Assembly (NCBI GenBank): GCA_047495785.1
Contig: JBLDXI010000031.1
Coordinates: forward strand, 1,240,001 to 1,304,000
Length of the DNA stretch: 64,000 nt
Direction: 5' to 3'
From: Lepidodermella squamata
Lineage: Eukaryota; Animalia; Gastrotricha
Position 1 is the stretch's first letter. Every line of letters begins with the position of its first letter. The position numbers were made by a program, and so were the translations under genes. Below the pieces are notes generated by a model. That model made no database searches and was not told the DNA's origin. It was given only the letters and a program-made list of their open reading frames with translations. Shown here piece after piece: positions 9,001-60,974 of the stretch.

Positions 9001-12000
9001 CGACAATTGTGGTGATAGTAGTGACGAAGAGAAATATTCATGTGAAAATCGCCTTGTAGCCAGCCTCGAAAATTCAGCGGCCGAGAGCCTGAAATTAACA
9101 AACATTGAACCCAGTTCAGATCACCCTGAAGTTCAAACCTCCTGGAGACTAAAAAATGGTCCTGCAAGTGAAAACCCAACTGGACCTAAATCCGACCATA
9201 CGTTGGGTAGCCCGGCAGGCTACTATTACTTATTAGATTCTGAAGCTCAAACTCAAGCAGACGCAATCGCTCGCTTAGTTACCGAACCGATCTTAAAACC
9301 TGCCGGCGAGTGTCAGCTCAGGTTTTACTATCATATGTGGGGTAAAGATGTGAGAAAGCTTGTCGTATATTACCGCACTACGAGTAACGGCCCAGCGAAC
9401 TTACTATGGAAACGAGAAGGAAATTTGCAAAACATGTGGCATCGAGCAGTTGTTGATTTGACGGGAATTGCTGAAGAATTCGAAATAATTTTCGAAGGCA
9501 AAACTGCTGGAGTCAATTCTATGAGCAGCATAGGGTTGGATGACTTCTCATTCTCAGAGGGATGTTTGAGGAGGAATAGTCCTCTTCCTATCTTTTCAAC
9601 GCCAAGTCCAGTTTTCACGACCGCCGAACCATGTGAATCTGATCCAAACAAATTCAGCTGTTTTGAGTCTGGAAGCTTGTGCATCGATCATGACTTGGTC
9701 TGTAATTTCGTGAAAGACTGTCCTAATGGTGAGGATGAGTCATTGTCGTATTGCATGGCTAATCCGACGAATTTTGATGGGTCGACCGTTGAGCAGAGCG
9801 GTTGGTATAGCTCGAACGGCAAGTGGGTAATCACAAAAGCTGACGATCTTCCGGATTCCTGCGTAAGTGCTTGTCCGAATTCGAGCACATCTGGAAATGG
9901 GCAGTACGCTTTAGTGGAATCTCCTCGGTCCTCAAGCTCTTACATGGCAACATTGGCTTTGAGATCGCCAATATCAAATACCGGCCCTTTGTGCATGCTA
10001 GTTTTTGACTACGTCGTAACTGAGAACTCAAAGCAGGGATTCGGGTCGATCACACTTTATAAAAAATTTGAAGATGCCTCAAACTCTAAGAAGAGCGAGC
10101 GTATCTGGATCGCTTACGGAAGCTACCTTGATAACAAGTGGATCCGAGCTGAAATCCCGCTAGGGAATAATAAAGTGCCGTTTTATCTCGAATTCCAAGC
10201 TAAAGGTCTCCCTGAAACTTATAAGCCTTCAGCCATTGCCTTGGATTCAATTTCATTTCTAAACTGTGGCCGATCACCGAAACAACCTTCGTGTAACACG
10301 GCCGAGTTTCGATGTGAGAAAGAGCAGACTTGTATCGACAAGCGTTACGTCTGCGATTTCGCTGATCATTGTGGTGATGGAGTGTCTTCTGACGTAACGA
10401 GCTCTGGCGATGAGCAGTTACAACTATGCGCTTCATCATACGTTGCGCGATGTGCATACGATTATCCGGCTGAGAATTGCGAGGACTGGGAGTCGGGCGA
10501 AGGGCAATTTTTATGGCGAGTTGTAGCGGCGAAAAATGCGCCGACATCAACATTACCTGGAGTAGATCATACGACAGGTTTGTATAAAGTATTTTAAACT
10601 AAAATTGCAACAGCTTGAAGTACAGGTACCCCCGATGGAAAGTTTTTGCTGCTCAACCACAATCGTAACAACGGCAAGAAAGTTGCTAGGTACAAGATAT
10701 CCAGACGTGTGGCATTGGATAGCAGCGGTGGTTGTAGGCTCCGTTTTTGGCTCTACTATTACAGCCCACAACTTGCTGAGGATTTCGGCTTATTGCAAGT
10801 CGTTGCAAGAACTAGTTATGCGCCAATTAAAGAAGTCTATATTGCAAATTTTACTGCATTCACTGGCAGCTATTGGGCAAGTTTTAGTTATAGAAAACGG
10901 CTAACCTAATCGTTTTCTTTTTCTAGTCAAGGCAGGACATTCCTATTGAACCTTCAAGCATTGGTGGAAATAAGATCTTCGAGCTGACATTTCGCGGTAT
11001 AGCCCTTAAATACCAGTTAAGTATTTAACTTCATTGTATGTCCTTTTTCAAGGAACGCAAGGGAATTCGGGTTATACAGGCGCTCTGGCAATAGACGATA
11101 TTTCTCTAACACCTGAGTGCCATCTAACTGATGAGTTACTGCCTGGTCAGTCAATCTCACCCGCTACAACGCGAGCTCCTCAATGTGAGGACGTTCCTGG
11201 TCACTATCAATGTAGTGATGGAATCGGTTGCTATTCTATAAGCCAACATTGCAATTTCATGGATGACTGTGCTGATGGCTCTGATGAATTTGGCTGCAGT
11301 AATTTTAAAATAACTAATGAGCCACATATCACTCAAAGCTTAAATGTTCTATTTTTCAGCTTATTCTTGTGATTTTGACGGGAGTTCGACCGAGTGGTGT
11401 AATTGGCATAACGACCCCAATGCGGTTAATACATGGAAGTGGTCAAAAAGCGGCACAACGTCCACTTCCCCCAAAAGTGATGCAACCGGTAATGGAACAG
11501 GCGGCTTCTTAATTGCAACCGGTGGAGTTAATCCCGGCGATAAAGCTGTGCTTCAATCAAACCTTTTCCAACACGCCTCGCCACTTTGCACCCTTCAATT
11601 TTATTACTGGGCTTACTTCAAAGTTGAAACGCGGAAACAGATACAAATGAATGTTTACCTCAAGAATTCGAAGCCCAACCCCGAACTGCTGCGTGTGGTC
11701 TTGCTGGGTCCAGAGCCTGGCTGGATTCTAACCAACGTCTCGCTAAATTCGTCCACCCCATTTGAAATTCAGTTTGAAGTCGAGAGGATTGCTGATGTTT
11801 CCGGAGAAATTGCAATAGATGGAATCAAGTTCATCGACTGCGCCCCTGAGACTCCAAGTGTTTCATGCTACAATCCCAGCGACTTTTTGTGCACAGACGG
11901 GCTTCGATGCATTCCATCGACTAAACTATGCGACTTCACTTCAGATTGTCGAGACGGTAGTGATGAAGAAGAGAGATACTGCTTAGCTTATCGAGCTCCT

Positions 12001-13005
12001 GGTAGTTGTACCTTCGAAAATCCTACCGATTGGAACAACGTTTGCTGGTTAGAAAAGCCTCTGTTTGAAGAGGAAATAGAGTGGAGGGCGGTTCAGGCCT
12101 TCGAAGTTCAGAAAGGTCCAACTGCCGATCACACCTTAGGATCGCCGTCCGGGCATGTTCTGCTAGCTGCTTCGAAAACAAGCGACGCTAGTGTTGATTC
12201 AAGAGCGATTATTACTTCAAAGGCAACTTTTCCGAAGAATCCATCTGGTTCTTGCGAAGTGAGGCTCTACTATTATCTTTACAGGGCATCGAAGAGTAGA
12301 GGCTCGGGCGCTATTAGTGTCTTTTCCGTTGGGGCTGAATCTGGATCAGCGTTTCTTCACCAAAAGCTGAGTCTATCCGGTGTAGCACCCGGGTCCAACT
12401 CCGCCAGTGGTCTTAATCAACAGTGGTCTTCTAAGGTCTTCTTCATATCTCGAGCGGAGGATTTCAGGATAGAAATCGTGGCGCATAACGACGATAGTCC
12501 ACTATCTATCATGGCCATTGACGATCTCAGCCTTTCAAGAGGGTGCCGAACTGGTGAAGAGGTTGTTTTCAACAACTCAACCATTCCAGTTTGTAGGGAG
12601 GAAGAGCTGTTTTGCCCGTCTGAAAGGTCTTGTATCCCTGCTGCCTGGGTTTGCGACGGAATATGTGATTGCCCTCCTAGTTCCGATCAAGACCTCTGCA
12701 TTGACGAAATTTGCAGCACAACAACTGAAAGTTCACTGTTGGAAACAAAAACTCCATTCCTTAATTCATCAATAGTTGCAGATACTACAACAGAAATTAC
12801 GGAACCTCAGTTAACAACGCCTATAAGTGCAATTGATCCCGGTGATCAAGACTTGGCCATCATTCTAGGATCCAGTTTTGGAGTGGCTGCTTTTCTTTGT
12901 GCTCTGGCAGGTGCAATCTTCTTATTTTTCAGACTCAAGCGGAGAAATCAGCCTGCGCAACTCTTAGCGGAAGAGAACAGCAACTCTGTAACGCCATCAG
13001 ATTAG
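3..13005 (+). CDS. Giant MAM and LDL-receptor class A domain-containing type-I membrane protein (MALRD1-like), 5' end outside window, multi-exon
   Basis: About 21 MAM repeats (CxFExxxCxW...DHT...GxY...CxxFxY...W...IAIDDI) and 9 LDLa modules (e.g. CNRFEFRCKNKICIDQSLQCDGYDNCGDSSDEE). The ORFs join through short GT-AG introns (e.g. 655-700, 827-875, 4283-4334, 4446-4499). C-terminal TM segment LAIILGSSFGVAAFLCALAGAIFLFF is followed by RLKRR. Stop at 13005; AATAAA at 13108. Confidence 0.92.
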
Positions 13006-13829: not shown

Positions 13830-16800
13830 TCAAATAAGCAGCTCATCATCATCACTCAGCGTGTCATTCAAATCAACAAGATTCGCCGTCGGCGCATTGA
13901 CCAGCCGCGAAAGCGCCGAATTCGCATTCGCCAACAACTCCTTCGGCGAGCCATTTTCAACGACCAAACCACCATCTACAACTATCACACGATCAAAGGC
14001 ACCATCAGCTAACACGTTCTGCAACCGATGCGCAATCATCAGCAACGCTCGACGCGACTCGCCAGACCCTGTCGCGCCCTGGCACAACGCTCGAACGACT
14101 ACAGCCTCGGTTTCGCTGTCAACCGAAGCCGTCGGCTCATCGGCACACAGCATCACAGCTGTTGAAGACGACAACGCCCTGGCTACGCATAACAGCTGCC
14201 GCTCACCTAACGATAGTTTCGCACCCCTCTCGCCAACATCACAGTCTAAAATCTCAGTACCAAGTGGCGTTAAACGCTGAATTTTATCGGTAAGTTGAGC
14301 TAGATGCAACGCATTAACCAAAACGCTCTCGTTTATCTGAAGGCCAGGGTCCAAATTCTGCCGAACCGTGCCTGAAAAAACAATAGGTTCCTGTGGCACA
14401 CTGGCTAATAACGAACGCAATTGAGTCCGAGTTAACGTCGCTGTATCTAAACCATTCACTTCAATTGACCCGCGTTCTGGGGTCACTAGCCGGAATAACG
14501 CAGCGATTAGCGACGATTTCCCAGCGCCTGTTCTGCCTACGACAGCGACACGTTCGCCCTGTTTAATCGTCAATGAGATTCCGTTCAACGCAAATGGAGT
14601 TGTTTCTCGGTAACGCAGCCAGACGTTGTTGAAAGAAACCGCTGGCACGTGGCGGCCCTGTAAAACTTGAGAGCCGCTTCGCGACGACGGTTCTTTCGCC
14701 TCCTCTTTCGGCAACCCGTCAATGTACTGCTTCACACGCTCTACGCTAATCATTTGCCGTTCAGTTTCTGTGAAAGATCCGATGAGTCCGGACAGGAAAC
14801 CGGTTAGTGATAACGCATAGGACAGACTTAGACCGACCAGCGCCGGGTCGGCTGTGCCCTTCCAATGCTCGAGAATCGCAGCGGCGCAGCACGCTCCCAC
14901 TGCGAAGACGCCCATGATTTGCAGGGTGGTTGATAGCCATTGGCTGGCGAGTAGCGACGAGAATTGAACGCGTTGATTCGAATCAACGTGGCGTTTATTC
15001 TCGTCCAACACCGAATTTTCAAGGACTAGCCCTCGGATTACAGGCAGGCAGCTGCCGGTTAATGCATACGACGTTGCGTGAGAGAAAATCGGCGATTGGC
15101 TGTTCATTTGCAGGCGTTTTAGGTCACGGCTTGAGAAGCGGTAAAAGCGTTGTAGGAAGTAGTAGATTATGGCGAGTGGGGCGACTACGGCCAATGTGAT
15201 TGGGGCTGCGTAGATGATGGTCCCTAGAGTGCCTATCAGACCGGCTATTTGAGCGAGAAGGATGTTCAACTCAAAGGGGACTGAGTCATCACAGGCCCAG
15301 ACGTCAGCAGTTATCCGGTTCAAAACGCGACCTAAGGAAAGCAAAATTAACGGTTTTAACACCAAATATCAATCGAAATGTCTCACCAATCGGGGTGTTT
15401 TCGAAAAAGCTAAGCGGTGCCTTCAAAATAGACCCGAGCAAGTTGTCGTGGAGCACGGCGGCTGCGTTGAGGCCGACATAAGCGAAGGAGAAAGCTCGAA
15501 GGAGGGCGAACAACGAATTTGCCCCGCCGATACCGCCGTAAACAGCCAGATAGACGTCGGTGCCATTTCCAGTGGTCACGCTCGTTCCATTCTACAAATT
15601 ACAAAACTGGTTAACTTTTGGCTATACCGAGTTGATTTCCCGGCTCAGTTTGCTTGCAAATTCAAAAATTCAATGTTTAGCTCGGTTGAAATAAATTTGA
15701 TGTGAGACGTGATATCAATAGAAAACCATCAAAAGAAAAAGCAGGATAGGTAATAGCATTAAATGAAACGAATTTGTTCGTCTTTAAAATCCTACTGTAT
15801 TGTAAAAACTACCAACAGTCCTGAATCGTAGCCCTTATCAATCTAATGCAAGCCCGTGACAATCTCATTCCTAATTCGAAGATTTTCACCATTTTTTTTT
15901 AATTTTCAAAACATTTCGAACAACTGATAATAACGCGATTTCTTATCTCTTCGCCAAAAAACTTTAGAAATTTTCAAAAAGCCAGAAGAACAGTAATCCA
16001 ATATATCACTTGCCATTGGGATTAAGAAATCCGGAGAAATTAGGTCCATACCGGTAAAATACCGAAAATTACCGAACCAGTTACCATCGGAGTTTCCCGA
16101 GTTTTCCCCGGTAATTTTTCAATTTTTTTCGGTGAATAAAGGATGGAAAAATCTCCCGGTAGCTGCAATACAAAACTACAACGAGCCCCATAAGTTGCAC
16201 AACCATTTTTTGTAATTTCGAACAATTTTAAGGAAATTAAACCAAAAAATTGTTAAATTAAGTCCACTGGGGACTGGGGGAATCTTCCATCCTTTTTCCA
16301 TCATTTTAGAGTTTCTGATCTCTTTCCCGTGCATTTTCTTTGTTGCGTTACTTATGGAACACGATGTTGTTCAATTTCCAACAAAAATTTGAAAATTCAA
16401 AAATATTATGGGCCGCCATGTAATTAATGGCAATTAAACAAAAATTGTTGGTAGGAAAAAATGGGCCGAAATCTTACCGGAGATGAGCCGAGCCAATGAG
16501 CTAGCCAAATATCAGCCGCATTTCGACTGCCCTGCATCAACACCAAGGTGATCAAAGCGAACGCACACCAGCCATAGCCCGCTGCTTTCACGTACGAATG
16601 CCAAACGTCAAGCCGAACCGAGCCAACTTGACTCTTCTCCTTCGATTCATCATCTTCCTCTTCGCTTTTCTGGTTATTTGCGTCATTTTCGGTTGCCGCG
16701 TCGTCCGCAGTTCGAGATTCAGCGTTGTCTTCGAAAACGTCGCTCGGCGTCCAGCTGCGGCCGAGAACTTCCTGAGCCGGCCCAGCAGCTTCAACCAGCC

Positions 16801-19800
16801 CATCGGCGCTGATTTTAATGACCAAATCAGCCCGGCTAGCCAGGTCGTGGCGAGTTGTGGCCATGACAACGCTTGCATTCTGCTCTTCGATCAGCAACTT
16901 CCGAACGCAGTGTGAGAAAATGTGCCGGCCAACTTTAGCGTCGACGCTTGAGAACGGATCGTCGAGTAAGTAGACCGAATGGTTCGAGTCGTAAATCGCT
17001 CGAGCTAGCGCAACACGTTGTCGCTGGCCACCACTACAAATGAAATAATCAGATTTTTCAAAAATCCGAAGAAATTCACTTAGAATAGTTAAAATAGAGA
17101 AAATTAACGAACAATTCCTATCGGAATATTTCAGGATTTTCGATAAATTTTACGGTGAAAATACTTTTAGTAGCTTTTATTTTGTAAAATTACAAAAATT
17201 TGAAAACATAAGAGGTTGCGCATTCTAGGTTGAACATTTTCCAGCTATTTTTTTTAGCTTATAGTGAAAATATTTAAATTCGGTGTGCCAATTTTTTCCC
17301 TGTCTAGCGCAAAATTTAAAAGAAAATTACCTGAGAGCAGAACCATCTTCGCCGACGTCAGTCAAATCGCCTCGCGTCATTCGATTCAGATCAGTTCGCA
17401 GGGCAGTTGCATCGATAACTTTTTCATACCTGCAATCAATAATCAACAGTAATTCTCGAGAATGTCGCCAAAATGAAAGACTAGTTTGCATTCACGTTCG
17501 CCAGAGGCAAAATTCAACGAAATTGTAGCTTGCGTTTCAGAAAAATAGATCTCACGGGAAATTTCGCTTTTTTCTTTTAATATTCGCCGAAATTTGAAAT
17601 ATAACATTTAAAATTTAAAATGAATTTCATGTTTATATATAATAATTTCGGGGTTTTTTATTTTGAGATTTTGAAATTGAAAACACCATAAATTTCAATT
17701 CTTCCATTAATACCACTAATTAAAATAATCCTCAGTAATTTATGGCGGATTTTGAAAAAATTCAGGAATGTAACCACGCGAAGTATTTATTAGATTTATT
17801 TGATAGCCAATTTTCTTACCGTTTGCTATCGAATTGGCGATGAAGTAAAATGTTGGACCGTATTGTGCCGGAAACAAGCCACGGCTGTTGGGGTGCAAAG
17901 CCTACTCCACTAAATTCGGCGCCAGCAATAAAAACATGCCCACTCTCTCGCACAAGCTGTTACAGAAACAAATATTCATTAATAAAACCTTGTATTTTCG
18001 ACAGCAAAAATAGCCGAATAATCAGAAAATTCACGTACCTCTCCAGCCAAAGATAGCAGGAATGCGCTTTTTCCAGAACCGAGATTGCCAATAACACAAA
18101 CCAAAGATCCTTTCGCAACAGTAATACTCGACATTGATTGCAACGTGAACGAATTAGCACTTTCATCGTCCGATTTCTTCCTCGGATAAGAAAATACAGC
18201 ACCAGGCGAAACACTGATAACGGCAGAATCGAGCGAGGAATGACTGACTGGGCAAAAATATTTCGATCTAGCGACAAGAGCCGCGTCTCGATTACGAAGG
18301 GAGCCAGCTCGGAATTGAACGAGGCGGAAAAATTTCTGTAACCTTCGCATAGAGACTATACCATCTATCGTGCCATTAACGACCCAGGGGAACGCATTTA
18401 AGGGTGCAATTAACATGTTGAATAGGGCGATTGACGTATAAACTCGGGTTGAAGTCAAAGGTTGCCCGCTCAGGTACAAAAACCCTATGAAAGTCGATAG
18501 TTGCATCAGTAACGGCGTTGTAGCCCAGAAATAGACGCAACCAGCGTCGAGTAATTTTCTGCCCTTCAAACATCGCCAGAGCTCAGTTTTTCGAATATTA
18601 ACAATTTTAGACATGAAAATCGACTCCCATGCGTAGAGTTTGACAGCTTTCATGCCTTGAAGCATCTCAGAGCAAAGTTTAACCCTCTCATCTTTGGCGG
18701 CCAGCATTTCTTGCGTGTATTTCATGATTTGACGGCAAATCACGAAATTAATCGGAATTAACAGAACCGCCAAAATCACGCCAGCGATGAAGTAAATGCC
18801 CAACTGCTGGTACAATAAGTAGAACGCTATTCCGATTTGAAACGGTAGTGACCACAAGCTGTGAAATGACGGTAGAATATTAGCGACGCGATCGGTGTCA
18901 GTCGATAGAAACGTCATAACTTGACCTGGATTGAATTCGGCGGTCAAAACTGCATGCGGTACAGATAACATTTTCGCGAAAATAGAGGCTATCAGCGACG
19001 CCCGAACTTGCATAGTCATGCATTGAATCAGGTAGGTGAACCAAGAGTTGGTGAGAGCTGAGAGAAAAGTAGCGCCGAATAACCCACCAGCAATAGCCCC
19101 GCCGTAGCTCAACGGCTTCGATTGATCACTGACAAAATCAGTTAGCATTCCGAGAAGAAACGGAGCTCCGAATGACAGAGAGTCGGATAGCAATTTTAAA
19201 ATTCCAATCGCGAAAAACTTCCACCCAAATGACTTGAGCAAAATTTTTAGCAATGAGACATTAGTACATCGATTTTCTAGATACTCCGAGTTATGATAAC
19301 AGCCTGTATTTCCTTCTTCCACTGCAGTTAAGCTGTTGATAAGCAAATCGTAGGCGACAGTAAATTTTCGAAGCAGATAGTCAGCCGTGAGGGATTTCGG
19401 TAGCTGAATGAGAGATTCTATTGACTCAAGGCCGTACTTTTTTCCACGCTTCAACAGTAGAAATGCATCCCAGAAGAACAGTCGTCCCAGAAAGTTGGTG
19501 ACTCTTTCAGTTGGAACAAATGAGCCGTTCACAGATCCATAAGCAGGCCCATTTTCAGATTGGATCAATGGGCGCTCTTCGGATACATTTTGACTGTCGA
19601 TAAAAGCGTACACTTGAAACACCCTTCGCTTGACAATGCACGTGGTGGTGACGAAGCCAAGAATGGCAAACAGCATGATAACTTGGTAGATAATAAGCAC
19701 AACGAAGTCCAGAGAAGAAACAGAACTGGCCGCATAGCTCAATATAATTGGAATTTGAGCAATGAAAATTAACGAGGCCGAGAGGGTGATTGGAAACATT

Positions 19801-20219
19801 CCGGGTAGTAGAACGTATCGACTGAGATGGACACGTCGGAAATACGTCAAGATTGTAATCCAAGTTGTAAACATGAGCATGATCATGCAGTCTTGAATGA
19901 AACCAGTCGATTGGCCAGTAAGAAAGATGACTAAAATTAGTTTCAATAGCGGCAAAGAAATGAGAAGAATCAGCATCAGCTGACAGAAATAACTCATGCG
20001 GACTGGAAACGGTAAACGAGTGTATTCCAAGGTGTGACGGTTTATCCTGTCACGTTTGGGGTATCTTCCGAGATAATAGGCAGTAATGATCAGGACAAGT
20101 GAATGGCTGATAAAGCCGAATACCATTGTCGAGAAGCATTGGCCGAACGCTAGTCCGGTCCAGATTGCCAGAGAGTCATCCTGTCCGCAAACCCCTTGCC
20201 AATCAGAAGGTAAATTCAT
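13830..20219 (-). CDS. ABCC10: ABC transporter C family member 10 (MRP7)-like; exons approx 20219-18039, 17956-17820, 17429-17331, 17033-16478, 15591-15387, 15331-13830
   Basis: TMD0 with the ABCC10-type motifs [27 protein letters not shown] and [14 protein letters not shown]1 has [10 protein letters not shown]|GGQRQR and [10 protein letters not shown]; NBD2 has [15 protein letters not shown] and ADE. Canonical GT-AG junctions. Likely start is ATG 20219 ([11 protein letters not shown]), just after an AG acceptor. Confidence 0.9.
16040..16362. repeat. Dispersed repeat shared between ABCC10 intron 4 and EHBP1 intron 2
   Basis: 16303-16362 (CATTTTAGAGTTTCTGA...TTGCGTTACTTATGGAACAC) resembles 30560-30620. 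16040-16110 resembles the reverse complement of ~30400-30460. Confidence 0.6.
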
Positions 20220-20970
20220 CAGTTCTATGAACAATAAATCAAATAAATTCATCAAGTCAAGGTTGCACACATCGATTCGAAGGACTCAAGAAGAATATAG
20301 CTCAATGTGTTGCGCTAATCCGTGACAATAAAAAGCCAAACATATAGCGATTGCGCTGAAGAGAAAGATGAGCTAAACCATTGCTAAATATGCTAGAACG
20401 CCATCAGCCATCAGCCAAACAATCAACGAACGCTGCGACAGTTGACAAAAACATCTGACCTGCGCGCATGAAAAGTGCAGCCAAAAAAAACATGAAGAAT
20501 TCAAAAAATTTCGCGGGTTTTCAAAACTGGATTCGTATAATAAAACTTATGTCAAGTTTTGTATCATATATTCAAGCATTTGATTTATTAAGTGTCCTTC
20601 ACGTCTATTAATTGCTCGATCTCAAGATTCATCTTTCACCGCAGTCGCCGAGGGAATCCCTTGCGTTTTTTGAGGCTTTTGGCGTCACAACTTTGCTGTG
20701 GGGAGCCATCTGGCAGCCTCGGGAAGCGACAGGTAGTGACACTCTCTGAGTCCTCAAGAGGGAACCCTCTGAGATGTAGACCCTATATTAGCTCTAAGGC
20801 CTGAGCTTCCCAGATTAAACTTTTGATTTGTTTTTGCTCTTGTCATCATACCTTACATCTTAACATCTAAATATCCTTGCTCAAACAATGCTGCTAACAC
20901 TTTGGCTATATCACGTGTGTCGTGGCTTTATAGTTTAGATTAGTTGGAGTAGTTCGCGTTTGCCGTGCGG

Positions 20971-50500: not shown

Positions 50501-53500
50501 TAACACTTATAGTGGACTTTCGCTTTAGTGGACAAATTCGGGTGACCGAGGCTTAAAAAGACCTGGTTCTATAATAATTGCTATCGGTATAGTGGACAAC
50601 ACATACAGTGGAAAATCGATATAGTGGACGAAAAATGAAGGCGCGTGTCCTATTAAGCGCACGTATTTTACTTGCGATATAGTGGACGTTCGAGCATTTT
50701 CTCAAACGGGCTGAAAAATTTGCATGCGTTTTATAGGGGAAATCACGAATTTTGACTTTCATTACATGATTTTTCACCGTTATAGGGTTTTTTTCTTTCA
50801 CTTAGGGGACAAACTCGATGGCATGAAGAGCGTCCACTATATCCATTTTCTACTGTATATACTTTTATAACTAATATATGTTGCATATCAAAGTTTCTTC
50901 CAATAGCCGATAGAGCTTTCGAGCTCTATAAACGATGATAATTTGATAGATAGTATGAGGATCAGAAGAAGGCGCTGAAAGCAACATTCAAATTGCTCAT
51001 TTAGATATCCCAGTCAGCAATTGGGAGAGTTGCCTTTTGATCATAGATAAATAATTTATTTATCTATGCTTTTGATATACGACATATATATGTCGCATCG
51101 TTTGATCCTCCCAAAAGACAATTGGGATAACCCATGAGGCAATATGCCCATTATGGAGATCGTTAGCGTTTCGGTATAACTCTCCATTTGACGGTAACTC
51201 CATGTCGTCATTGTTCTCTAGTTGCGGTAAATAGTTTACCGTAAACGGCACTACACTGCGACAATAACGCGTAAAATACTCGCGTGCGGTAAAATTAATT
51301 TCTCTGCGGTAATTTCAGCTCATATTATCTAGTAGGAACAGTAGGAATAACAAGCATATTATGGAGGAATAGAAATGGAGTTGGAACTACCCTCAGGTTA
51401 TTGGTGTGCGCGCGCAGCCGCTCGCGTACTTACAATACAGCGTGTTACGCAACCGCTGTAGCGCATTGCTGCGAGCCGCAAGCCACAAGCTTGGGCCGCA
51501 AGTGCTTCTGCGGTAAAAATAACGCCGCGTGCGGTAAAAATTAACTTACGCGGCGCCGTTAGTTTTACCGCACGAGCATTAAGTAACCTGGTTTGCGTGC
51601 TGCGGTAAAATACTTACCGTCAAATGGAGACTTATACCGAAACGCTAACGAGATATCAGATATCGCTAAGAACAATAATTGACAGTATCTAGAAACTCCG
51701 AATATTTCCTCCTGTAGCCTTGCTCACTGATTAAAGTCCCAACTAAGTGGGTTGATAGAGATAAAATAAAGCTTTCCCGAAGTTCAACCAAAACCCGACT
51801 GATAGATCATAGTTGGCAGCTGAAACTTTTGCTGAACCTTCCAGGTTCAACTTAATGATCTTAGTTCCGACTGATTAATTCGCCATCAGAAGCAATTGAT
51901 CAGTCTAAAAAGTAAACTCAACCGCTAGTTGATTTCATGGAGGTTGGAAGAGTCTCTAGCATCAACTTCTGTGGAAAAAAGGATTCCGAAAATTCAAGCA
52001 AGGTGAACCACATACTAGAACTGGGGAATCAAAAATGAAACTGCTAGGGTTGATATCCTTTTAGAAAATTTAAATTTGCGTATTATTTGAAATTTCCAGC
52101 CATTAATGCCGAAAAATGATAATAAGTAGAGAATAAATTGAAAATACTACGATTATCGGTCATCGATGTATCGTTTTGGGAAATAATTATTTTGGGAATT
52201 AATTTGCTTAAAAAGTAGATTTTTAGAGCAATTTCTCTTCAGGGTAACCCAATTGCCAATTGGGGCGGATTGCTCGTAACGGTACGACCCCCGTTGGAAA
52301 CAGGTCCGGTCGACCGACGCCGTTCCCGGTCCGTTCCCGTTCCAGGTCCGGTATGGGTCTCAAAAAACGCCACCGGTAGACCGGGAAAAGTTGAATTTTC
52401 AATTTAGCAGGCTGGGCGTGGGAAAAATCTATAGCAAACTATATTTGTATGGTATGACATTAGTAAAACGTTTATATCTGTACGGAGCCGCCCGAGATTT
52501 ACGAGTCGGAACGAGCCGGAGGCGAGTTGCGATGAGTAAATCGAGTGCGGCGAGTTCAGATATGAACGATTTACGAATGTTATACCGTAAAATATCGAAT
52601 TGTCATAGCGACTCGACCTATATTTTTGGCGACAATTCTATATTTTCCAGTTTTGCTCATTATTCTGACTGTGTGCATTAGTGTCGCAGTGCAATGTTTT
52701 GCAAACTTATTAGCTGGTTGGGCTGGTAGGGGCTTACCGAACTATTATACTGACCCCGATCGAAAGGCCCCGTAAGCCTTAGAAGGCTCCTAGCATAGAT
52801 TGATCTGATTTTTTAGCTGAGTTAAGAAAATGTATGCGTTTGGTATCTTGTTTTCGCTATTTTCATGCGATTTGAAAAATGCAGTTCCATAACCGGTAGA
52901 ACGGGCCGTTCCCGCCCCGGTCAAGTTTGACTTCCACCGTTCGCAGGTCCGGTACCGGACTGCAATACCTTACCTGTTTCCAACACTGGGTACGACATAT
53001 ATGATTAGGGTTTGAAAGAGTGTGCAGCATTTAGCTGAGTAGCTGAGTAGCGACCCAGTAATAAGTTTTCGGCTAGCTTTCTGATTTGCTGAAATTTTCC
53101 AGACTGTTGGGAGCGGCTTAATTTTTGGCTTCGACAAAGCTCCGGATTTGAACTGCGATAATTTTTGTGAGTTAATTGATAGCTATTTTCCTGCGTTTTA
53201 CTTAATCTTCGCCAAAGACGATGACTTGTGCAACGACTTTGTGTTCATTCGAGATCTTGGCAAAGCGGGATATCCGGGATTTAAGTGAGTCATTCCAACG
53301 AAAGCAAGTCACCAACTATTCAATTTCTGATGGTAGACTTTGCACCTGTTCTGTCAGCAGAGGCCGCGTTTTTGTTACCGACAAGAATGAAGCCAATGTT
53401 CATTTCCGATCTATATGGGACACACCCTCAACTGGATTCAAACTGATCGTGTATGCTACCTGCCCGGGCGTCCAAGCCTCTAATTTCACGAAGGATTGCA

Positions 53501-54501
53501 AGCTCACTGAGAATGCCTATGATTATGAAGGCTTCGATTTGAAAAAGAGCGTCAGCGGCGCTACTTGTGATGCTTGGAGTGGTCTCAACGAAGCTAACCC
53601 CTATACAAGCTACATCGATAGATACCCACTTGGATTGCCTGATGCGTCGATGAATGCCTGCCGGAATCGACAAGATCTCAACGCGACGACCAAACTAGTT
53701 TGCTACACTAACAACTTGACCCAGCTTGAACAGTGTGCCGACGTGCCATTCTGCTACGACACCAATGGTACAACACCAACGAATTCGTCGAACGGCGGAA
53801 ACAATGGTTAGCGATAGTTATCCCGTACGCGAAATTCTCACTTTTCTTCCAACTAGGAAATCTTCAATTTCGATGCCTCGACGCCTCTACTGGACAATTC
53901 CTCGGATGCCGTTCCACTTGTCTGTCGGGCGAGGTTGCAATTGCGAATAGCAAGTTCAGCTCAGCGTCATGTTGCTTTGGCGTGAGTTTCTCCATCGAAT
54001 AACTATTTTCAGGATAGATTCACCGTATGTTGTCCTTGACCTACAGCCGGCTAAGAGGTGCATCAAGGGCGACTCGTTCCGCTGTGTTCCTGGAGGCACC
54101 AAGTGTGCAGCTGATGAAACCACGGTAACAGTTGGTTTCTCTTCTTGTTTTGTTACCTGTTATAAGTATTTAGGAAGAGCGTAAATTCAATGTCTACAAA
54201 TACTTTTCGCGCAATCTGCTGGCTTGTAATGAGATGGACAGTTACGTAAGTTCAATCCCTATGCAATCGCGGTATAAAATGTACGGCAAGTTTGCCGTTT
54301 TCGCAGTCTTACATTCGTTGCTACAATAAGGATAAACCTCCAGAGCTAATCGACTGTCAGCGAGATAACAGTCGTTGCAAAGACGGGCAGGTATAATAAT
54401 AATTGTATTGCATCAGCATTACTTTGTTTATATATTTGCCTTTATCGTAGGATCCAGTTGGTCCGTTTCCATCCGTGTCATCTTGCTACGCCGGGCTGTA
54501 A
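47512..54501 (+). CDS. Secreted astacin-like (M12A) pseudo-protease with EGF, CUB, kringle-like and C-terminal Cys-rich repeats; multi-exon
   Basis: Signal peptide, then WPQPVVYWY, AIEDSTCIKF (exon from 48955), GMSFEARRPDRDDY (49264-49367), PFDYDS, LSFLDIYKLNKLYNC, EGF (CENGGY...CRCPFGFGGKLC), CUB (CGG...IKSPNHP...CSWMV; resumes at 53103) and a kringle (CKLTENAYDYEG...SGATCDAW...NACRN...CYT...EQCADVPFC). The last exon 54451-54501 is tentative. Confidence 0.8.
48581..48793. mobile_element. MITE with ~50 bp TIRs and TA flanks, in pseudo-astacin intron 1
   Basis: GAACAGATAAAAATGAAGTAAGGAATGAGTTCGGACTAGACTTCGGATTC pairs with GAATCCGAAGTCTAGTCCGAACCCATTCTTTACTTCA...TTATCTGTTC; TA on both sides. 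Confidence 0.75.
50113..50456. mobile_element. Tc1/mariner-type MITE
   Basis: TA|CCGTACTGCCCGGAA ... TTTCGGGCAGTACGG|TA. Confidence 0.8.
50478..50855. mobile_element. pogo/Tigger-type MITE
   Basis: TA|CAGTAGAAAATCGTTATAGTGG ... CCACTATATCCATTTTCTACTG|TA, with internal TATAGTGGAC repeats. Confidence 0.8.
51161..51650. mobile_element. Non-autonomous TIR element with apparent 4-bp target duplication (AGAT)
   Basis: 37-bp TIRs CGTTAGCGTTTCGGTATAACTCTCCATTTGACGGTAA / TTACCGTCAAATGGAGACTTATACCGAAACGCTAACG. AGAT at 51157-60 and 51651-54. Internal GCGGTAAAA repeats. Confidence 0.75.
52289..52988. mobile_element. Non-autonomous hAT-type element with 8-bp TSD
   Basis: GGTACGAC is duplicated at 52281-88 and 52989-96. 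Termini are ccccGTTGGAAACAGGT / ACCTGTTTCCAACACTG. An internal imperfect palindrome lies at ~52449-52587. Confidence 0.75.
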
Positions 54502-55774
54502 GCAATGCAAGTGCTGCTGGAATTGAATTAAATTACTCTTATTATTATTCATGTTAAGTATATATTGACATTATTGGCGTTTAGCCTTTAGCAGCATGCT
54601 AACATTTAGGTATCTGCCGAGTTGATATAATCGTATTTATTATTTAAAACCGCAGAGAATAAAACAAATATTGCTCAGGTAAAACTTGTTACGGCAATAC
54701 ATGAAATTGTTTCCGGTGATGAATTGGGCAAATTCAAGCATGCAGTAGAAGCTGAGTGCTGAGTGCACATGGTGTGAAAACCCTGCAGCCTGCAATAGAT
54801 TTGCCAAAAACTGGTTAGCCTCTACTTTCTTAATACCTAGCAACAGACTCGTCTCGTTGGGAGGAATCCGATTGATATATCAATTTCGAGAATCTGGCAG
54901 GATCTGAGCATCTGATTGTTAAGGTTTCATCCGACAATCAGATGGGGGTCTTCGGTCTTCGGTCCTCGGTTGACCGCTTCGAATTGCTCGATACGGAAAA
55001 AACGCTCGATACATAGCACGTGTTGCAAGTTTATTCGCGAACAGCGTACGAAAGGGAACTCTTAAGCTGAGGTGTTTTCCAGTGCCCAGCCGAAAAGAGA
55101 TGGTGTCGTGTGTCGTGACGCCCCAGCGTCCCTGCATGGATGACGGCATGGGAGATCTGCGACGAAAAAGGCGGACCATCCCGCCGTTTGCCTGGCAGGA
55201 GTCAGTGACTACAGCCATTATTTCTTACGGTGGAAAGCTCGTGTCATGAAAGTGGCCAGGGCAGATAAAGAAAGATCTCCAATCTTGACAACGGTTGCAA
55301 TGATTTGGCGACTGTTTTCGTTTGCCAAGATTGCGTCAGAGAAAAATGTCGCAAGACGAGCTAACAACCCCTTTGATTGTCGAGATCTGTCTCAAAAAAT
55401 GTTTAACAGAGAAATCGGGTTGGGTCGTCGGTCGATTCGTAAGTTCACTCGTGTTTCTGCCCTCTGTGCCATACAAGATTTGATCTATGCGCACTACTGC
55501 CTTGAATAATCCTGACGTGGGAGATTTATTAATAGTTAAGCACTTGATTTTTAGCTATCTTGAATAATTCCGTTTGTCAGATAACATTTTTCTTCCTTCC
55601 CTCAATCGCTCATGTTTTTTGTGTTATTACCAAACAAAAGACAGGTCTTATCGCAATTTTTTGCACCACTTATTTTCACACTCCCACGTTTTTTAGCCCA
55701 GCCACTCGCTATGAAACATTGGTATGCTGATTAGCCAAGCCAAAAAACGAGATAAGGCAATTATCAGCTGGCGT

Positions 55775-55782
55775 TATATAAG
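55775..55782 (+). promoter_or_regulatory. TATA box with nearby GATA motifs for the His-rich gene
   Basis: TATATAAG ~80 nt upstream of ATG 55855. GATAA-type sites at ~55579 (AGATAA), ~55647 (CTTATC), ~55750 (AGATAA) and ~55761 (TTATCA). Confidence 0.55.
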
Positions 55783-55854
55783 CCGCAATATTACCTGGTG
55801 ATACTTATTCCATATATTTTTCTTGTTTCAAAACCAACACTCCTATCCTTCATC

Positions 55855-56196
55855 ATGTGTAAGTAAATTTTGCATTAGTTGGTATTGAAATTCAGTTTCA
55901 TGTTTCAGCTCACCACGGACACCACGACCCCCACCATGGCCACCACGTTCCCCCGGTGGTCCACCATGTTGACCCTCATCACATGGCTGCAGCTCACGTT
56001 GTAAGTATTATTAGTAAATTTGTTTTCATGTTTTAAATATTTTTTTTGTCAAAAGGTTCAGCACGTAATTGACCCCCACCATGGCCACCACGTCGCCCCG
56101 GTTGTTCACCACACCGTTGTTGATCACCACCACGTGGCGCCAGTTCACCACCACCACCCACCGCCCCACCATGACTCCCACCACCATCACCATTAA
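55855..56196 (+). CDS. 78-aa histidine-rich mini-protein; exons 55855-55858, 55909-56000, 56056-56196 (not in ORF track)
   Basis: ATG T|gtaagt...tttcag|CT..., then GTT|gtaagt...aaaag|GTT..., giving MSHHGHHDPHHGHHVPPVVHHVDPHHMAAAHVVQHVIDPHHGHHVAPVVHHTVVDHHHVAPVHHHHPPPHHDSHHHHH* (34 of 78 residues His). TATA box upstream; AATAAA at ~56347. Confidence 0.85.
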
Positions 56197-56595
56197 ATCA
56201 CCATAAACATCAGGTCATCGATTGTGCGGCGGATACAAATCCCGATAAATGATGTCTGTAACTGGGTCACAGATTGAACGATGAACTTGCGTTGAATTTC
56301 AACGCTTGTTGCAATAATATTATTGCTTGCACTGATTTATTCGTAAAATAAAATTTATAAAAAAAAACATAACTTGCATGGTCTTTTTGAATTGCATGGA
56401 AATATGCTCTAATATTCGCGAAAAAATCGGAGAATGTTAATTAATTAGATCTCTACCGCTGCCACCTCAATTTTAGTGTTGCATATTACGGCCTTCGAAA
56501 AAAATTAATTTAATTACATTATTTTATTTCATTAATAATGGAAAATAGTGAAACAAATGAGTAAGTAGGAGTTTTAATTTTCCAAACATTTTTCG

Positions 56596-58520
56596 CTATT
56601 TTGCCGCGTGTTTTTGCAGTCCACACGAGCAATTGATGCCTTGATGGTGCTTGGCCGTTATTTCCTTCAGACTGTACTCCTTCATCCGGTGGCCGTAGTG
56701 GTGGTAATGGGCACAATACAAGCAACAGAGTGCCTTATTAGCACAGGTTAGGCACTGCTTCATCGGCTGCTGGAAGGCCACCAGAAACGCGTCGAACGTA
56801 CACTTCGGACCGCCGTAGACGTAGTTGATCGCCAAAATGTCCCGAGCGCTTAGCCCTTGAAAAGAAAATATCAAAAAATCGATATTCAGTTGAAATAATC
56901 TGTTCGAAAATCAATTTCAAAAATTTTAGACATGCGAAATTGAAATCGAAATTTCAAAAAAATTCAAAAATTTTCAATTACCAATAAAAAAAGTAATAAC
57001 AAAATTTAGGAATTTAAATTTCTGTTTTTTAAATCACTTAATTTTCAATTTTTTTACTTACCTCCTGGACGGTTTTCATTTTTAATGAAAGGCTTGAACC
57101 AGTCATGAAAATTAGCTTTGAAATGGCGGCCACATTCGTAGTTCATAATCGAATCCGAATCGTAGTTTCCAAGCGAAGTGAACCGCCTGTTATCTCCATC
57201 CACCTCACCAGAATCTTCGCTATTAGCGTCCTTAGCAACAACTAGGTAAGCATTATCATTATTTTTATGCCCGTGGTCGAAACCAAGCGTGTGCATAGCT
57301 TCGTGTAAAATCGCGGTGAAATCTCCGAATTTGTGGTTCACATTGAACAGTTGACACCCGCCTATGCGGCCGATTTTCGAGTAAGTCTGCGAGTTGTGGT
57401 ACGTGAAGAGAACGTAATGGGCCTCGTGAAATCGCGGCGTGAAATCAATGTTAGAAACTTTCTTATTAATCTCGCCGATGACGCATTTAATGTTCCATAT
57501 TAGGTCATCTTGGTAGCAAAGCTTCTTTTTCGAAATGAGGAAGGATTCTCGATCGATTACGTAAGGAATTTTCCCACATGGCCAACAGTAAGGCGATTCC
57601 GAAGGATGCGAATATCTAAAATAAATTTGAATCGATTTCAAAGATAAACTTCGATTGTAACATTTAAATTTTAATTGGTGATCGAATTACGAAAAATCTC
57701 GGGAATTGTTATTGATCATAACAGGAAATTCTGAATTTTAAAGGTGAGCTCAATTTTTGTATGCCAAATTTTGAAATTTTGAAAAATAAAGTTGAAAATT
57801 CACGATTCAGCAGCCGGCTGATTGTATTGCTGGCAATTCTCCTCTGGGGTCAATAGCCGTTTGTAGGATAACTTTTTCGCAAGTTTTCGCTCAAATAGAC
57901 CAGACGTGTAATCGGGTTCAGGAGCTGTAGAAGATTCATCGAGTAGCACAGATGAGCTGCTTGCCGATGCCGAAAATTCATTTTTGCCTCCGATCGATAC
58001 TTCGGCGGAACAATTTCTAACTAACTTGAGTGCTGTCCAGATCTAAAAATTTTAGATTCAATTTAAACAAATTAAAATAGCAATAATTTTCAATTTTAAA
58101 GTACCATCAAAGTTTTTATCAGGCCGGCTATCCATTCGCTCAGCTTGAAGATTGCAGTGAATGCTGAAATCCAAATTAGAACTTGAAATGCTGTTTCCAA
58201 CATCCAAAATGGTGGAGTATTTTCGATAGGAACCGTTGTGCCTAACAGCCATGGTGATATCACCTCTGTGTAAACGCACCGAAAACCGGTTAAAATTGCG
58301 ATAAATATCGCCCGGAAAAGGGTGAAAACGTTGCCAATCAGCCAGATAGAAATTGGGATGAAAATATTCCTAAAAATGCTGATTATCGTAGCGATCGTGG
58401 AACTGATTGGCCAATATACAGCTAGCCTAATTGTGTCAACAATTTGCAAAATATTTGAAGGATCCAGGTTAATTGCCGCAGCCAACATTAGTTCATAAAA
58501 TTGTGGCCTCTCATATTCTG
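56596..58520 (-). CDS. Hydrophobic N-terminus + astacin-like metalloprotease + UBR-box-like zinc finger; exons 58520-58105, 58042-57804, 57615-57062, 56855-56596 (true start uncertain, possibly ATG 58749)
   Basis: Phase-compatible GT-AG joins. Astacin motifs WPCGKIPYVI, HEAMHTLGFDH, Met-turn YDSDSIMNY and GLSARDILAINYVY, followed by CTF-x13-CLTC-x6-CLYCA-HYHHYGH-x19-CSCG. Confidence 0.8.
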
Positions 58521-59291
58521 CTATAAATAATATTTTAAGGCTACCTCTCCGCAGAATGTAGTTGCTATACGAACCAGTATTACTTCATCATTCGTGCTAT
58601 AACGCGTTGCATCGGCCTTTAAAAATCGATTTTCGAATGATGATTTTCACCTGCGGGATAATAGATTTACACTAGATGTGGAAAGATCGGCCTTTCGGTA
58701 AACAAAACCGATAACATTCACGTTTTTCCTTTTCTTGTGGCTTGGCATATAGAAAAACGAGTCGAAATTCCGCAGTTTTGTAGTGTCCTTATTTCAGACA
58801 CTTTAGCTGGATTTTCCGTGTTTTTTCCTGAATTTAAATCTCGAAAATTGTCTCGCAGCATCGACAATTTATTTTCTATCTACCACCAGCGATTCACCAT
58901 TCGTTTGAAATGAACTCATTCCCATTTTCGAATAAACCAGTTATTTTATTGTTTTTACTCTATCACCTTTGAGAATTGACAGTTTCAAACATCATATAGG
59001 CAGTAATCGTCGTAACATTTTATGTAGTCATTCAGTTTACTTCTGAAGGGAGAAGGCAGGCATCACAGGGAAGAGGAAGACAACAATAAAGCAGAGCAAA
59101 TAATCCTCAAAAAATAAACACAGGAAGACGAGCTAAATACTCGGAAAAATATGAGCTATACTCCAACCGGTCACATGCGACTTAATTTTGGCACACGGTC
59201 GCTACATAATTTCAACCATCATAATAGATTTAATAAACAAAAAATACTTCAGTCCAGTCAATTTTCGTCAAGAATCTCTCGAATTATTCGA

Positions 59292-60974
59292 TTAGGTGAT
59301 GACAGTGGGCGATTCGCGTTTAAGGATCTTCGCCAAATCAGAAACGCTCAGAGCAACACGCGCCAACGGGGCGAGCATTTGCTGCGTATCAACCTGCCAG
59401 TTCGTCGACGGCTGTTCCATGTAGAGTCGAACCGTAGCCCCCGAAGACCCAGTGCCACTCAGGCGATAAATCACCCTAGCGCCATTTGCGAACATGATAC
59501 GAACACCCTGGCGTTTAGTCACCGACCCATCAACCGGGTCAGTGTATTGAAACTGGTCCATATCAACGACTTTGAAGCCGTCGAACTCCTTGCCGATCAG
59601 CTCTTTAGTTTCAATCATTTTATCGAGGCTTGCAATCAGTTTATCGCCATCGGCCGATGCGCAGTTTTCGTAGTCCCAGCGCGAGAAGTAGCAACGGCCG
59701 TGCTTTTGCCACACCTCTTCAACAATTTCTTGCACGCCATTTTTCGGCCGACGAGCCGCGAGAACGGACAGCCACGCTAGGGCAGACCAAACGCCGTCCT
59801 TCTCGCGAATGTGATCCGAGCCGGTTCCGAACGACTCCTCGCCGCACAGCGAGATGAGCCCGGCGTCCATTAGATTGCCGAAAAACTTCCAGCCAGTTGG
59901 GACTTCGAAGCATTTGATGTTCTTACTCTTCGCGACAATGTCAACAGCGCACCCTGTCGGCATGCTTCGGGCAACGCCGGGTAGACCTCGCTGCCTCAGC
60001 CAGCGAATATGCTCAGAGTTATCAGCCAGAGCAGCCAAGGAGTCACTCGGGGTAACGAAAAACCCGCTCTTACCAATGATCATGTTACGATCACCGTCGC
60101 CGTCAAACGCAGCGCCTAGATCGAACTTTCCGGTTTTCATCGATTCAACCAACTCGTGGGCGTAGGTCAAGTTCGGGTCGGGATGTGACCCGCCGAAATC
60201 AGGCAGTGGGTTACAGCGGACTGCAGCCGAAGCCGGAGCTCCAAGTGTTTCACACAGAATTTTCTTGACGTAAGGCCCCGTAACGCCATGCATCGCGTCG
60301 AATTGAACCTGGAATCCAGACGCGATCAAGTCACGCATTGCGTCGAAATCAAACAGTTGACGCATGTATTGAAGATAGCCTTCAACTGGGTCGACGATTT
60401 CAACAACCGTCGTTGAGTTTCCGGTCGAGAAGGTGTGACTACCAATTGCGTCGATATCAATGTTGACAGAGTTGCTGATCTTGTAGGTTGTAAGCTTCTT
60501 GCTTTCAGCGAAGATGCGCTCAGTTACGCTGCTTGGAGCTGGACCGCCATTGGGCGTGTTGTATTTCACTCCAAAATCAGCCTCAGGACCTCCGGGGTTG
60601 TGGCTTGCGGTTAGGATGATACCGCCATGAGTCTTGCGACGACGGATGCATTCGCTGACAGCAGGCGTTGACATCAAACCGCCAGCACCGACGATCAGGC
60701 GAGCAATGCCATTAGCAACAGCCATTCTCACGATGGTAACAGTCGCTTCGCGGCCGAAATAACGGCCATCACCACCGACGACGAGTTCGCAGGGGCCATT
60801 AGGGCACTGACCCAGGTCGCCCGCCAAGACGGTGTTGATGGTAGCTTGGATGAAGTTCTCCAAGTAGTGAGGCTTCATAAAGTGAGGTGTAGGTTTACGG
60901 AGACCACTTGTGCCCGGCTGCTGGTCGGTGAACGCAGTGGTCTGCACAGTGCTTACTTCGTGATTTGCTGCCAT
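59292..60974 (-). CDS. PGM1: Phosphoglucomutase 1, intronless, 560 aa
   Basis: PGTSGLRK, catalytic TASHNPGG, metal loop DGDGDR, sugar loop GEESFG and the C-terminal RLSGTGSSGAT...PTVIT. Confidence 0.97.
   Translation of the reverse strand: MAANHEVSTVQTTAFTDQQPGTSGLRKPTPHFMKPHYLENFIQATINTVLAGDLGQCPNGPCELVVGGDGRYFGREATVTIVRMAVANGIARLIVGAGGLMSTPAVSECIRRRKTHGGIILTASHNPGGPEADFGVKYNTPNGGPAPSSVTERIFAESKKLTTYKISNSVNIDIDAIGSHTFSTGNSTTVVEIVDPVEGYLQYMRQLFDFDAMRDLIASGFQVQFDAMHGVTGPYVKKILCETLGAPASAAVRCNPLPDFGGSHPDPNLTYAHELVESMKTGKFDLGAAFDGDGDRNMIIGKSGFFVTPSDSLAALADNSEHIRWLRQRGLPGVARSMPTGCAVDIVAKSKNIKCFEVPTGWKFFGNLMDAGLISLCGEESFGTGSDHIREKDGVWSALAWLSVLAARRPKNGVQEIVEEVWQKHGRCYFSRWDYENCASADGDKLIASLDKMIETKELIGKEFDGFKVVDMDQFQYTDPVDGSVTKRQGVRIMFANGARVIYRLSGTGSSGATVRLYMEQPSTNWQVDTQQMLAPLARVALSVSDLAKILKRESPTVIT

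Follow-up and report, generated by a model that had tools for sequence, protein, structure and literature searches.

A candidate three-exon gene for a histidine-rich protein

Within a 64-kb stretch of the genome of the gastrotrich Lepidodermella squamata (assembly GCA_047495785.1, contig JBLDXI010000031.1, positions 1,240,001 to 1,304,000), hereafter called the window and numbered from its first nucleotide, we examined a candidate gene for a small, cysteine-free protein that is very rich in histidine. The gene model has three exons and was read directly off the forward strand, with a TATA box at 55775 and an AATAAA poly(A) signal at 56347 (Table 1). Direct reading bore out most of what an initial annotation, made from the letters of the DNA, had proposed for this locus, namely three exons of which the first contributes ATG and a single T, GTAAGT donors, the TATA box (TATATAA) and poly(A) signal, and a product of 78 amino acids with 44% histidine, DPHHGHHVxPVVHH repeats, a terminal run of five histidines, no cysteine and no signal peptide. 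The annotation was also right that the gene is missed by the mechanical list of open reading frames (ORFs), which holds exon 3 alone, as a 58-amino-acid ORF opening with TTG; the gene escaped this list because its first coding exon is only 4 nucleotides (nt) long. Two alternative models were rejected. A gene on the opposite strand was ruled out, as the TATA box, the ATG, both donors, both acceptors and AATAAA all lie on the forward strand, and the sole ORF with a hydrophobic start that was examined as an upstream signal-peptide exon (55612-55734) meets exon 2 out of frame.

The predicted product contains 34 histidines in its 78 residues (43.6%), along with 14 valines, 10 prolines, 5 aspartates and 5 alanines, and is built from 11 kinds of amino acid, with no cysteine, lysine, arginine, glutamate, leucine, asparagine or aromatic residue. 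It begins Met-Ser-His-His-Gly-His-His-Asp and finishes with five histidines, ending ...HHHHPPPHHDSHHHHH. Two full copies of the DPHHGHHVxPVVHH unit are present, one in exon 2 and one in exon 3, plus degenerate copies, and the chain carries a run of four histidines in addition to the terminal five and approximately 17 HH pairs, arranged with HHxHH and HH-5 residues-HH spacings between valines and prolines. The first 20 residues are hydrophilic, with a mean Kyte-Doolittle value of -1.2, which indicates that there is no signal peptide. AlphaFold2 modelling of exon 3 returned coil only, with a predicted template-modelling score of 0.19.

Exon 3 opens with tandem in-frame acceptors 6 nt apart (56056-56061), CAAAAG followed by GTTCAG. 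Use of both could yield isoforms of 78 and 76 amino acids, the downstream acceptor dropping two residues.

Evidence for translation and selection in the histidine frame

All six frames in the mechanical ORF list are open within the CAC-rich blocks of this locus, and since CAC-rich DNA is open in every frame, open frames are no proof of coding. Other features of the sequence bear on the question. GTAAGT occurs at only 12 sites on this strand of the 64-kb window, and two of these coincide exactly with CAC-rich block edges; the exons have 60-63% GC and the introns only 16-28%, and both introns preserve the frame. In exon 2 the histidine frame offers no ATG and a stop at 55860 closes it, so that a splice from the ATG+T exon is required.

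The two repeat units offered a comparison internal to the gene. When the unit at 55926-56000 was aligned with that from 56071 onward, the 25 aligned codons differed by 9 synonymous and 7 replacement steps, giving a synonymous rate (dS) of 0.97 and a replacement rate (dN) of 0.13 in the histidine frame (dN/dS ∼0.13, a small sample of 25 codons, pointing one way), against dN/dS values of 1.1 and 1.8 when the same alignment was read in the other two frames. Third positions hold 9 of the 16 differences (P=0.05). This synonymous excess supports translation of, and selection on, the histidine frame. Codon usage gives weak support for coding: CAC makes up 79% of the histidine codons here, compared with 40% in neighbouring long ORFs, 67% in phosphoglucomutase and 100% in EF-1alpha. 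The two introns share an 18-nt stretch that is 83% identical; their similarity score is not above that of shuffled introns, and we do not claim that an intron was duplicated along with the exon.

Five related genes in the genome

The initial annotation treated the gene as standing alone, an idea that did not hold up, since four further genes of the same family are present in the genome: A, B and D, arranged in tandem on contig C12, and C on contig C3 (Table 1). Protein comparison was blind to this family. Translated searches of the genome with exon 2 and exon 3 returned only the query itself, and those with paralogue exons returned only themselves or the nearest tandem copy. The paralogues surfaced instead through a search for patterns of histidine codons, followed by reading of the loci. 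The pattern ATGTGTAAG-N30-80-AGCTCAYCAY had three matches in the 121-Mb genome, in the window gene, A and B, while the reversed control had none; paralogue C was recovered with a relaxed start pattern, and D was found adjoining the pair on C12. An HHGHHV match on contig C7 was set aside as chance, there being no histidine-rich frame at that site. The lesson of this locus is that a 4-nt first coding exon, which defeated the ORF list, and low complexity, because of which the paralogues were missed, together hid both the genes and their kinship from the ORF list and from translated searches of their own genome.

In the window gene, A, B and C, ATG+T is followed by a phase-1 intron of 50-57 nt and then by CT-CAY, producing Met-Ser-His; in A and B the arrangement is ATG+T, GTAAG, an intron of 55-57 nt, AG and CT-CAY-CAY. 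Gene D differs, beginning Met-Tyr-His-Pro-His-His. All five models close in frame across one to five GT-AG introns of 50-63 nt, and the products (window gene, A, B, C and D) are 78, 99, 101, 111 and 121 amino acids long, with 44, 35, 16, 21 and 20% histidine, respectively, making the window gene the shortest and most histidine-rich member. Every product lacks a hydrophobic N-terminus, has between zero and two lysines plus arginines, carries histidine clusters at both ends and appears disordered, and none has a membrane helix (maximum 19-residue hydropathy ≤1.54). The product of C starts Met-Ser-His-Gln and contains P.VVH(T) repeats, a stretch rich in alanine, glycine and valine, and a run of six histidines. 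A C-terminal block, GHA[IV]..ALFG(G)HHHH, is found in A and B; C and D carry an altered version.

Similarity among the products was measured against shuffled sequences. The scores exceeded the shuffles for A and B (z=16.6), A and C (z=6.5) and B and C (z=4.9). For the window gene and A, z was 2.6, with 11 of 1000 shuffles reaching the observed score (P ∼0.01), and the two have the motifs PPVVHHVD.HH, VAP.VHH and (D/N)SHHHHH in common. Over a block of 15 codons, GHAISDALFGHHHH, which the window gene does not have, A and B differ by seven synonymous changes and at most one replacement change (0-1), and this synonymous excess indicates that the family is translated and selected. We conclude that the window gene is very probably a genuine protein-coding gene that belongs to this five-gene family.

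Table 1. Positions of the window gene, its promoter elements and its paralogues
Feature	Position	Strand	Description
GATAA site	55580-55584	+	∼-275 from ATG
GATA 8-mer TCTTATCG (CGATAAGA on other strand)	55646-55653	-	at -209
Two GATA sites	55751-55765	+ and -	just 5' of TATA box; AGATAAG on +, TGATAA on -
TATA box	55775-55781	+	TATATAA; 80 nt upstream of ATG
Exon 1	55805-55858	+	∼50 nt inferred 5' untranslated region, then coding ATG+T (ATG 55855-55857, T 55858)
Intron 1	55859-55908	+	50 nt, GTAAGT...TTTCAG, phase 1, 28% GC
Exon 2	55909-56000	+	92 nt; completes Ser codon, then 30 codons; repeat unit 1 at 55926
Intron 2	56001-56055	+	55 nt, GTAAGT...CAAAAG, phase 0, 16% GC
Exon 3, coding part	56056-56196	+	141 nt: 46 codons, then TAA (56194-56196); repeat unit 2 at 56071
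3' untranslated region	56197-56370	+	AATAAA at 56347-56352; 3' end inferred
Tandem genes A, B, D	C12:530520-533215 (L023 2021-4716)		small His-rich genes without signal peptide
Gene A	C12		6 exons, 99 amino acids
Gene B	C12		3 exons, 101 amino acids, Y/P/Q-rich core
Gene D	C12		2 exons, 121 amino acids, five GPGFGP repeats
Gene C	C3:479916-480307 (L036 1501-1892)		2 exons, 111 amino acids

GATA sites in the promoter and the nature of the 5' end

The region upstream of the window gene is enriched in GATA sites, with four GATAA/TTATC matches in 300 nt compared with a window mean of 0.8 per 300 nt, and only ∼1% of windows of this size reach four. The initial annotation had pointed to these sites, and their relevance is strengthened by the paralogues, because the 8-mer TCTTATCG at 55646 recurs upstream of three of them. 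Read as CGATAAGA, it lies in the same orientation at -209 in the window gene, -185 in A and -198 in C; gene D has it at -49 with the orientation reversed, and it is absent upstream of B. The 8-mer is infrequent: the whole 64-kb window has only two copies, and 36 kb of unrelated loci have one. The footprint of the 8-mer among the paralogues supports control by a GATA factor. Gene C has a TATA box, TATATATAAG, at -98; its GATA sites lie at -201, at -196 and within the intron.

No AG occurs between the TATA box and the ATG of the window gene, so that a trans-splice acceptor is lacking there and the 5' end is probably not trans-spliced; an Rfam scan of the window and a search of the genome for the nematode spliced leader SL1 were both blank. 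An exact 10-nt direct repeat, CTTGAATAAT, is present in the distal promoter at 55501-55510 and 55559-55568, the copies lying 58 nt apart.

Searches for relatives outside the genome

Searches beyond the genome were run exon by exon. Pfam scans of both window-gene exons and of four paralogue exons assigned no family, and a word search with the 58-amino-acid exon-3 ORF and with paralogue C (109 amino acids) gave no match at E≤1. An exhaustive HMMER phmmer search with exon 3 returned no match at E≤0.001 among 1.84 billion representative proteins, the ESM Atlas yielded nothing usable for exon 3 or paralogue C, and metagenome contigs were blank both for a 36-nt stretch of exon 3 searched as an exact pattern and for paralogue C searched by back-translation. 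As far as these searches can see, the family appears to be restricted to this animal. The blank results do not date the family, given how short and low in complexity the peptide is and given that the protein collection contains no close relative of the animal. The last point follows from the phosphoglucomutase encoded in the window, whose best matches are no closer than 56% (52-56% identical) and are scattered over many animal phyla; this protein had no entry in the exact-sequence index, and it therefore offered no route by synteny to an orthologue.

Comparison with small poly-histidine proteins

A close known counterpart in kind is KREG-1 (F53A9.2) of C. elegans, a protein of 83 amino acids with poly-histidine stretches that is induced by Cu2+ in the intestine and required for resistance to heavy metals, and for which its authors proposed metal chelation (PMC3578760). 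The window product is likewise a small poly-histidine protein, of 78 amino acids with runs of four and five histidines. The two differ in regulation, since KREG-1 is controlled through TPA-responsive element (TRE)/AP-1 sites and the window promoter has none, and in structure, the valine- and proline-rich DPHHGHHVxPVVHH repeat and the split ATG+T start being specific to the gastrotrich family. Similarity to KREG-1 was not detected in the word search or in the library-wide phmmer search with exon 3, a comparison made through the library and not by direct alignment, with scoring that is insensitive for low-complexity sequence.

A second counterpart is bacterial. Hpn of H. pylori has 60 amino acids, of which 28 (47%) are histidine, makes up ∼2% of cell protein, is cytoplasmic and sequesters nickel, and a short CAT-repeat motif is its proposed origin (PMC4671568). 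Its histidine content and size resemble those of the window product (44% histidine), and neither protein has a signal peptide. In contrast, Hpn contains two cysteine pairs together with glutamate and glutamine, whereas the window product has no cysteine, no glutamate and no glutamine-rich part; Hpn is also a bacterial protein, regulated by NikR and serving urease maturation. Homology to Hpn or Hpn-2 was not found at E≤0.001 among the 1.84 billion representatives searched with exon 3, and the word search was blank.

Metallothioneins resemble the window product in being small and of low complexity and in the metal-buffering role proposed for it, but they bind metal through clusters of cysteine thiolates; the window product has no cysteine at all and is therefore not a metallothionein. 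Small, cysteine-free poly-histidine peptides are a kind already known from a bacterium and a nematode; the gastrotrich sequence family appears to be new and unrelated to both. The initial annotation's idea of a cysteine-free, metallothionein-like buffer is chemically reasonable but not new.

Should the peptide be produced in vivo and bind metal or haem there, it would add an independent animal case to KREG-1 and Hpn in the very short list of cysteine-free poly-histidine buffers, and would do so in a phylum for which there is almost no molecular biology. The five paralogues, with histidine contents from 16% to 44%, would then also form a series in which to ask how such peptides arise and diversify. 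Interest would rise if a haem or metal role were shown in so little-studied a phylum.

A possible intracellular metal buffer

Clustered imidazoles chelate nickel, copper, zinc and cobalt, and can ligate haem iron. Our favoured reading, held tentatively, is that the window product may be a cytosolic poly-histidine buffer or store for metal ions, possibly also for haem iron, in GATA-expressing cells. A GATA factor would drive transcription, placing expression in the gut or epidermis, and the peptide would remain in the cytosol, where its HH pairs, in HHxHH and HH-5 residues-HH spacings, could chelate Zn, Cu, Ni and Co through their imidazoles, and possibly haem iron. It would then act as a store of high capacity and low specificity, as was proposed for KREG-1 and shown for Hpn, and would give up its load on acidification. 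The calculated isoelectric point is 6.7, and the calculated net charge moves from ∼-4.5 at pH 7.4 to +12 at pH 6 and ∼+26 at pH 5, a swing from which it follows that binding should be released at acid pH. Histidine occupies N-terminal position 3, or positions 2 and 3 once the methionine is removed, a placement that would match the pattern of an amino-terminal copper- and nickel-binding (ATCUN)-type site only with a free amino group; an N-terminal serine is frequently acetylated in eukaryotes.

Several observations weigh against this metal-buffer reading or the family model on which it draws. No RNA evidence was found for the window gene or its paralogues, and neither exon 3 nor paralogue C drew a match by word search. 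The GHA..ALFGHHHH block at the C-terminus of the other four is missing from the window gene, whose similarity to B and to C was not above that expected from composition in the shuffle test. Valine codon usage is unlike that of EF-1alpha, GTT accounting for 64% of valine codons here and GTC for 83% there, a difference that makes repeat slippage, rather than high expression, a possible source of the CAC bias. With regard to regulation, the promoter shows no metal-responsive element (MRE) above chance: the MRE match that the initial annotation had noted at 55488 is the only TGCRCNC there, and it is at chance level given the 51 matches in the 64-kb window (0.4 per 500 nt). The promoter is also without TRE/AP-1, antioxidant response element, SKN-1 and heat shock element sites, and GATA sites, which are compatible with gut expression, do not separate gut from epidermis as the tissue of expression. 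Because any peptide with 34 histidines will bind Ni, Zn or Cu in vitro, such binding alone would be no proof of a physiological role. Finally, the cores of the paralogues (Y/P/Q-rich in one, GPGFGP repeats in another) suit a role as a material or condensate equally well.

Other readings of the peptide

An alternative that we regard as unlikely is that the peptide is a cytosolic haem buffer or chaperone, in which bis-histidine coordination by the HHxHH motifs would retain haem within GATA-expressing cells, the haem being derived from food. It draws on an apparent gap in metabolism, as the ferrochelatase, UROD, ALAD, CPOX and porphobilinogen deaminase families had no match in the 121-Mb genome while the citrate synthase control was found; the animal may be a haem auxotroph, although the missing pathway rests on a six-frame scan of a single assembly. 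With haem synthesis apparently lost in this animal, a role in haem handling can be tested directly. The composition of the window product, which combines histidine with small hydrophobic residues and aspartate in HHxHH spacing and has no lysine, arginine or aromatics, also resembles the tandem AHHAHHAAD repeats of Plasmodium falciparum HRP2, which form bis-histidyl haem complexes (PMC4232395). Homology between HRP2 and the window product was not detected. HRP2 is exported and works in an acidic vacuole, and it is much longer and rich in alanine, while the window product is rich in valine and proline. It further counts against the haem reading that no haem-responsive element came to light, no search having been aimed at one, and that, to our knowledge, the haem-trafficking proteins of haem-auxotrophic nematodes are not poly-histidine proteins. 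A broader version, in which a cytosolic poly-histidine sponge evolved independently as a substitute for thiol buffers and, in a phylum auxotrophic for haem, handles both dietary haem and metals in the gut, seems to us quite doubtful, and to the same slight degree we would entertain its corollary, that such a haem sponge, if real, has converged in function on Plasmodium HRP2 and Helicobacter Hpn.

The paralogue cores raise the possibility of a self-assembling material or condensate protein, whose histidine-rich termini would act as cross-links, switched by pH or metal, between low-complexity cores. In mussel preCol termini, Nereis Nvjp-1 and squid beak HBPs, clusters of histidine flank low-complexity cores and support cross-linking that depends on metal or pH. 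The gastrotrich paralogues similarly retain histidine-rich ends around divergent cores (V/P-rich, Y/P/Q-rich or composed of GPGFGP repeats), and the near absence of lysine and arginine, the calculated charge switch between pH 7.4 and pH 5 and the all-coil model are all in keeping with such a function. However, preCol, Nvjp-1 and the HBPs are secreted with signal peptides and are rich in glycine, alanine and tyrosine, while none of the five family products has a signal peptide, and in the window product histidine extends along the entire chain and is not confined to the ends. The signal peptide typical of secreted histidine-rich peptides (histatins, Nvjp-1, HBPs and HRP2) is likewise absent from the window product, and we know of no structural histidine-rich protein that is not secreted, nor of any structure that needs the window product. 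On this reading the family would form a gel inside cells, or else a structure that leaves them by a non-classical pathway, and we consider this a rather improbable role.

The reading that survives least well, and which we think very unlikely, is that of a young, weakly expressed or unexpressed ORF without selected function, produced by slippage of CAC repeats and internal duplication, since the lack of homologues outside the genome and of RNA evidence, the openness of all six frames in the CAC-rich blocks, valine codons unlike those of highly expressed genes and the proposed origin of Hpn itself from a short CAT repeat (PMC4671568) are set against a synonymous excess between repeat units in the histidine frame alone, intact promoter, splice and poly(A) signals, conservation of the start architecture and of the GATA site across paralogues located on three contigs, and strong purifying selection between A and B.

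Genomic surroundings and other histidine-rich loci

The introns of neighbouring genes are short, at 58-59 nt. The upstream neighbour (53221-54500, forward strand) is a cysteine-rich gene of several exons that shows a weak kringle-like match and ends ∼1.3 kb before the histidine-rich gene; AT-rich, poly(A)-like signals are found near 54640-54665. The phosphoglucomutase gene (59292-60974, reverse strand) is complete and intronless and encodes 560 amino acids. An astacin gene lies at 56596-58749. Farther away, the regions 788-13005 (forward) and 13830-20270 (reverse) take in very long exons carrying 16 or more MAM domains along with LDL-receptor class A repeats and, next to these on the other strand, an ABCC-type transporter.

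Histidine-rich frames were also noted on other contigs. At L024 1958-2377 (contig C20), an open frame has a very histidine-rich N-terminal part (29 histidines in 140 amino acids), then a proline-rich stretch and a C-terminal CxxC with a hydrophobic end; the C-terminal part looks LITAF/SIMPLE-like. Near-identical paralogous frames at L026 1865-2353 (C16) and L028 1758-2246 (C7) each have a hydrophobic N-terminal segment followed by HHGHHHSHH...HHHHHH runs, and may encode histidine-rich single-pass membrane proteins.

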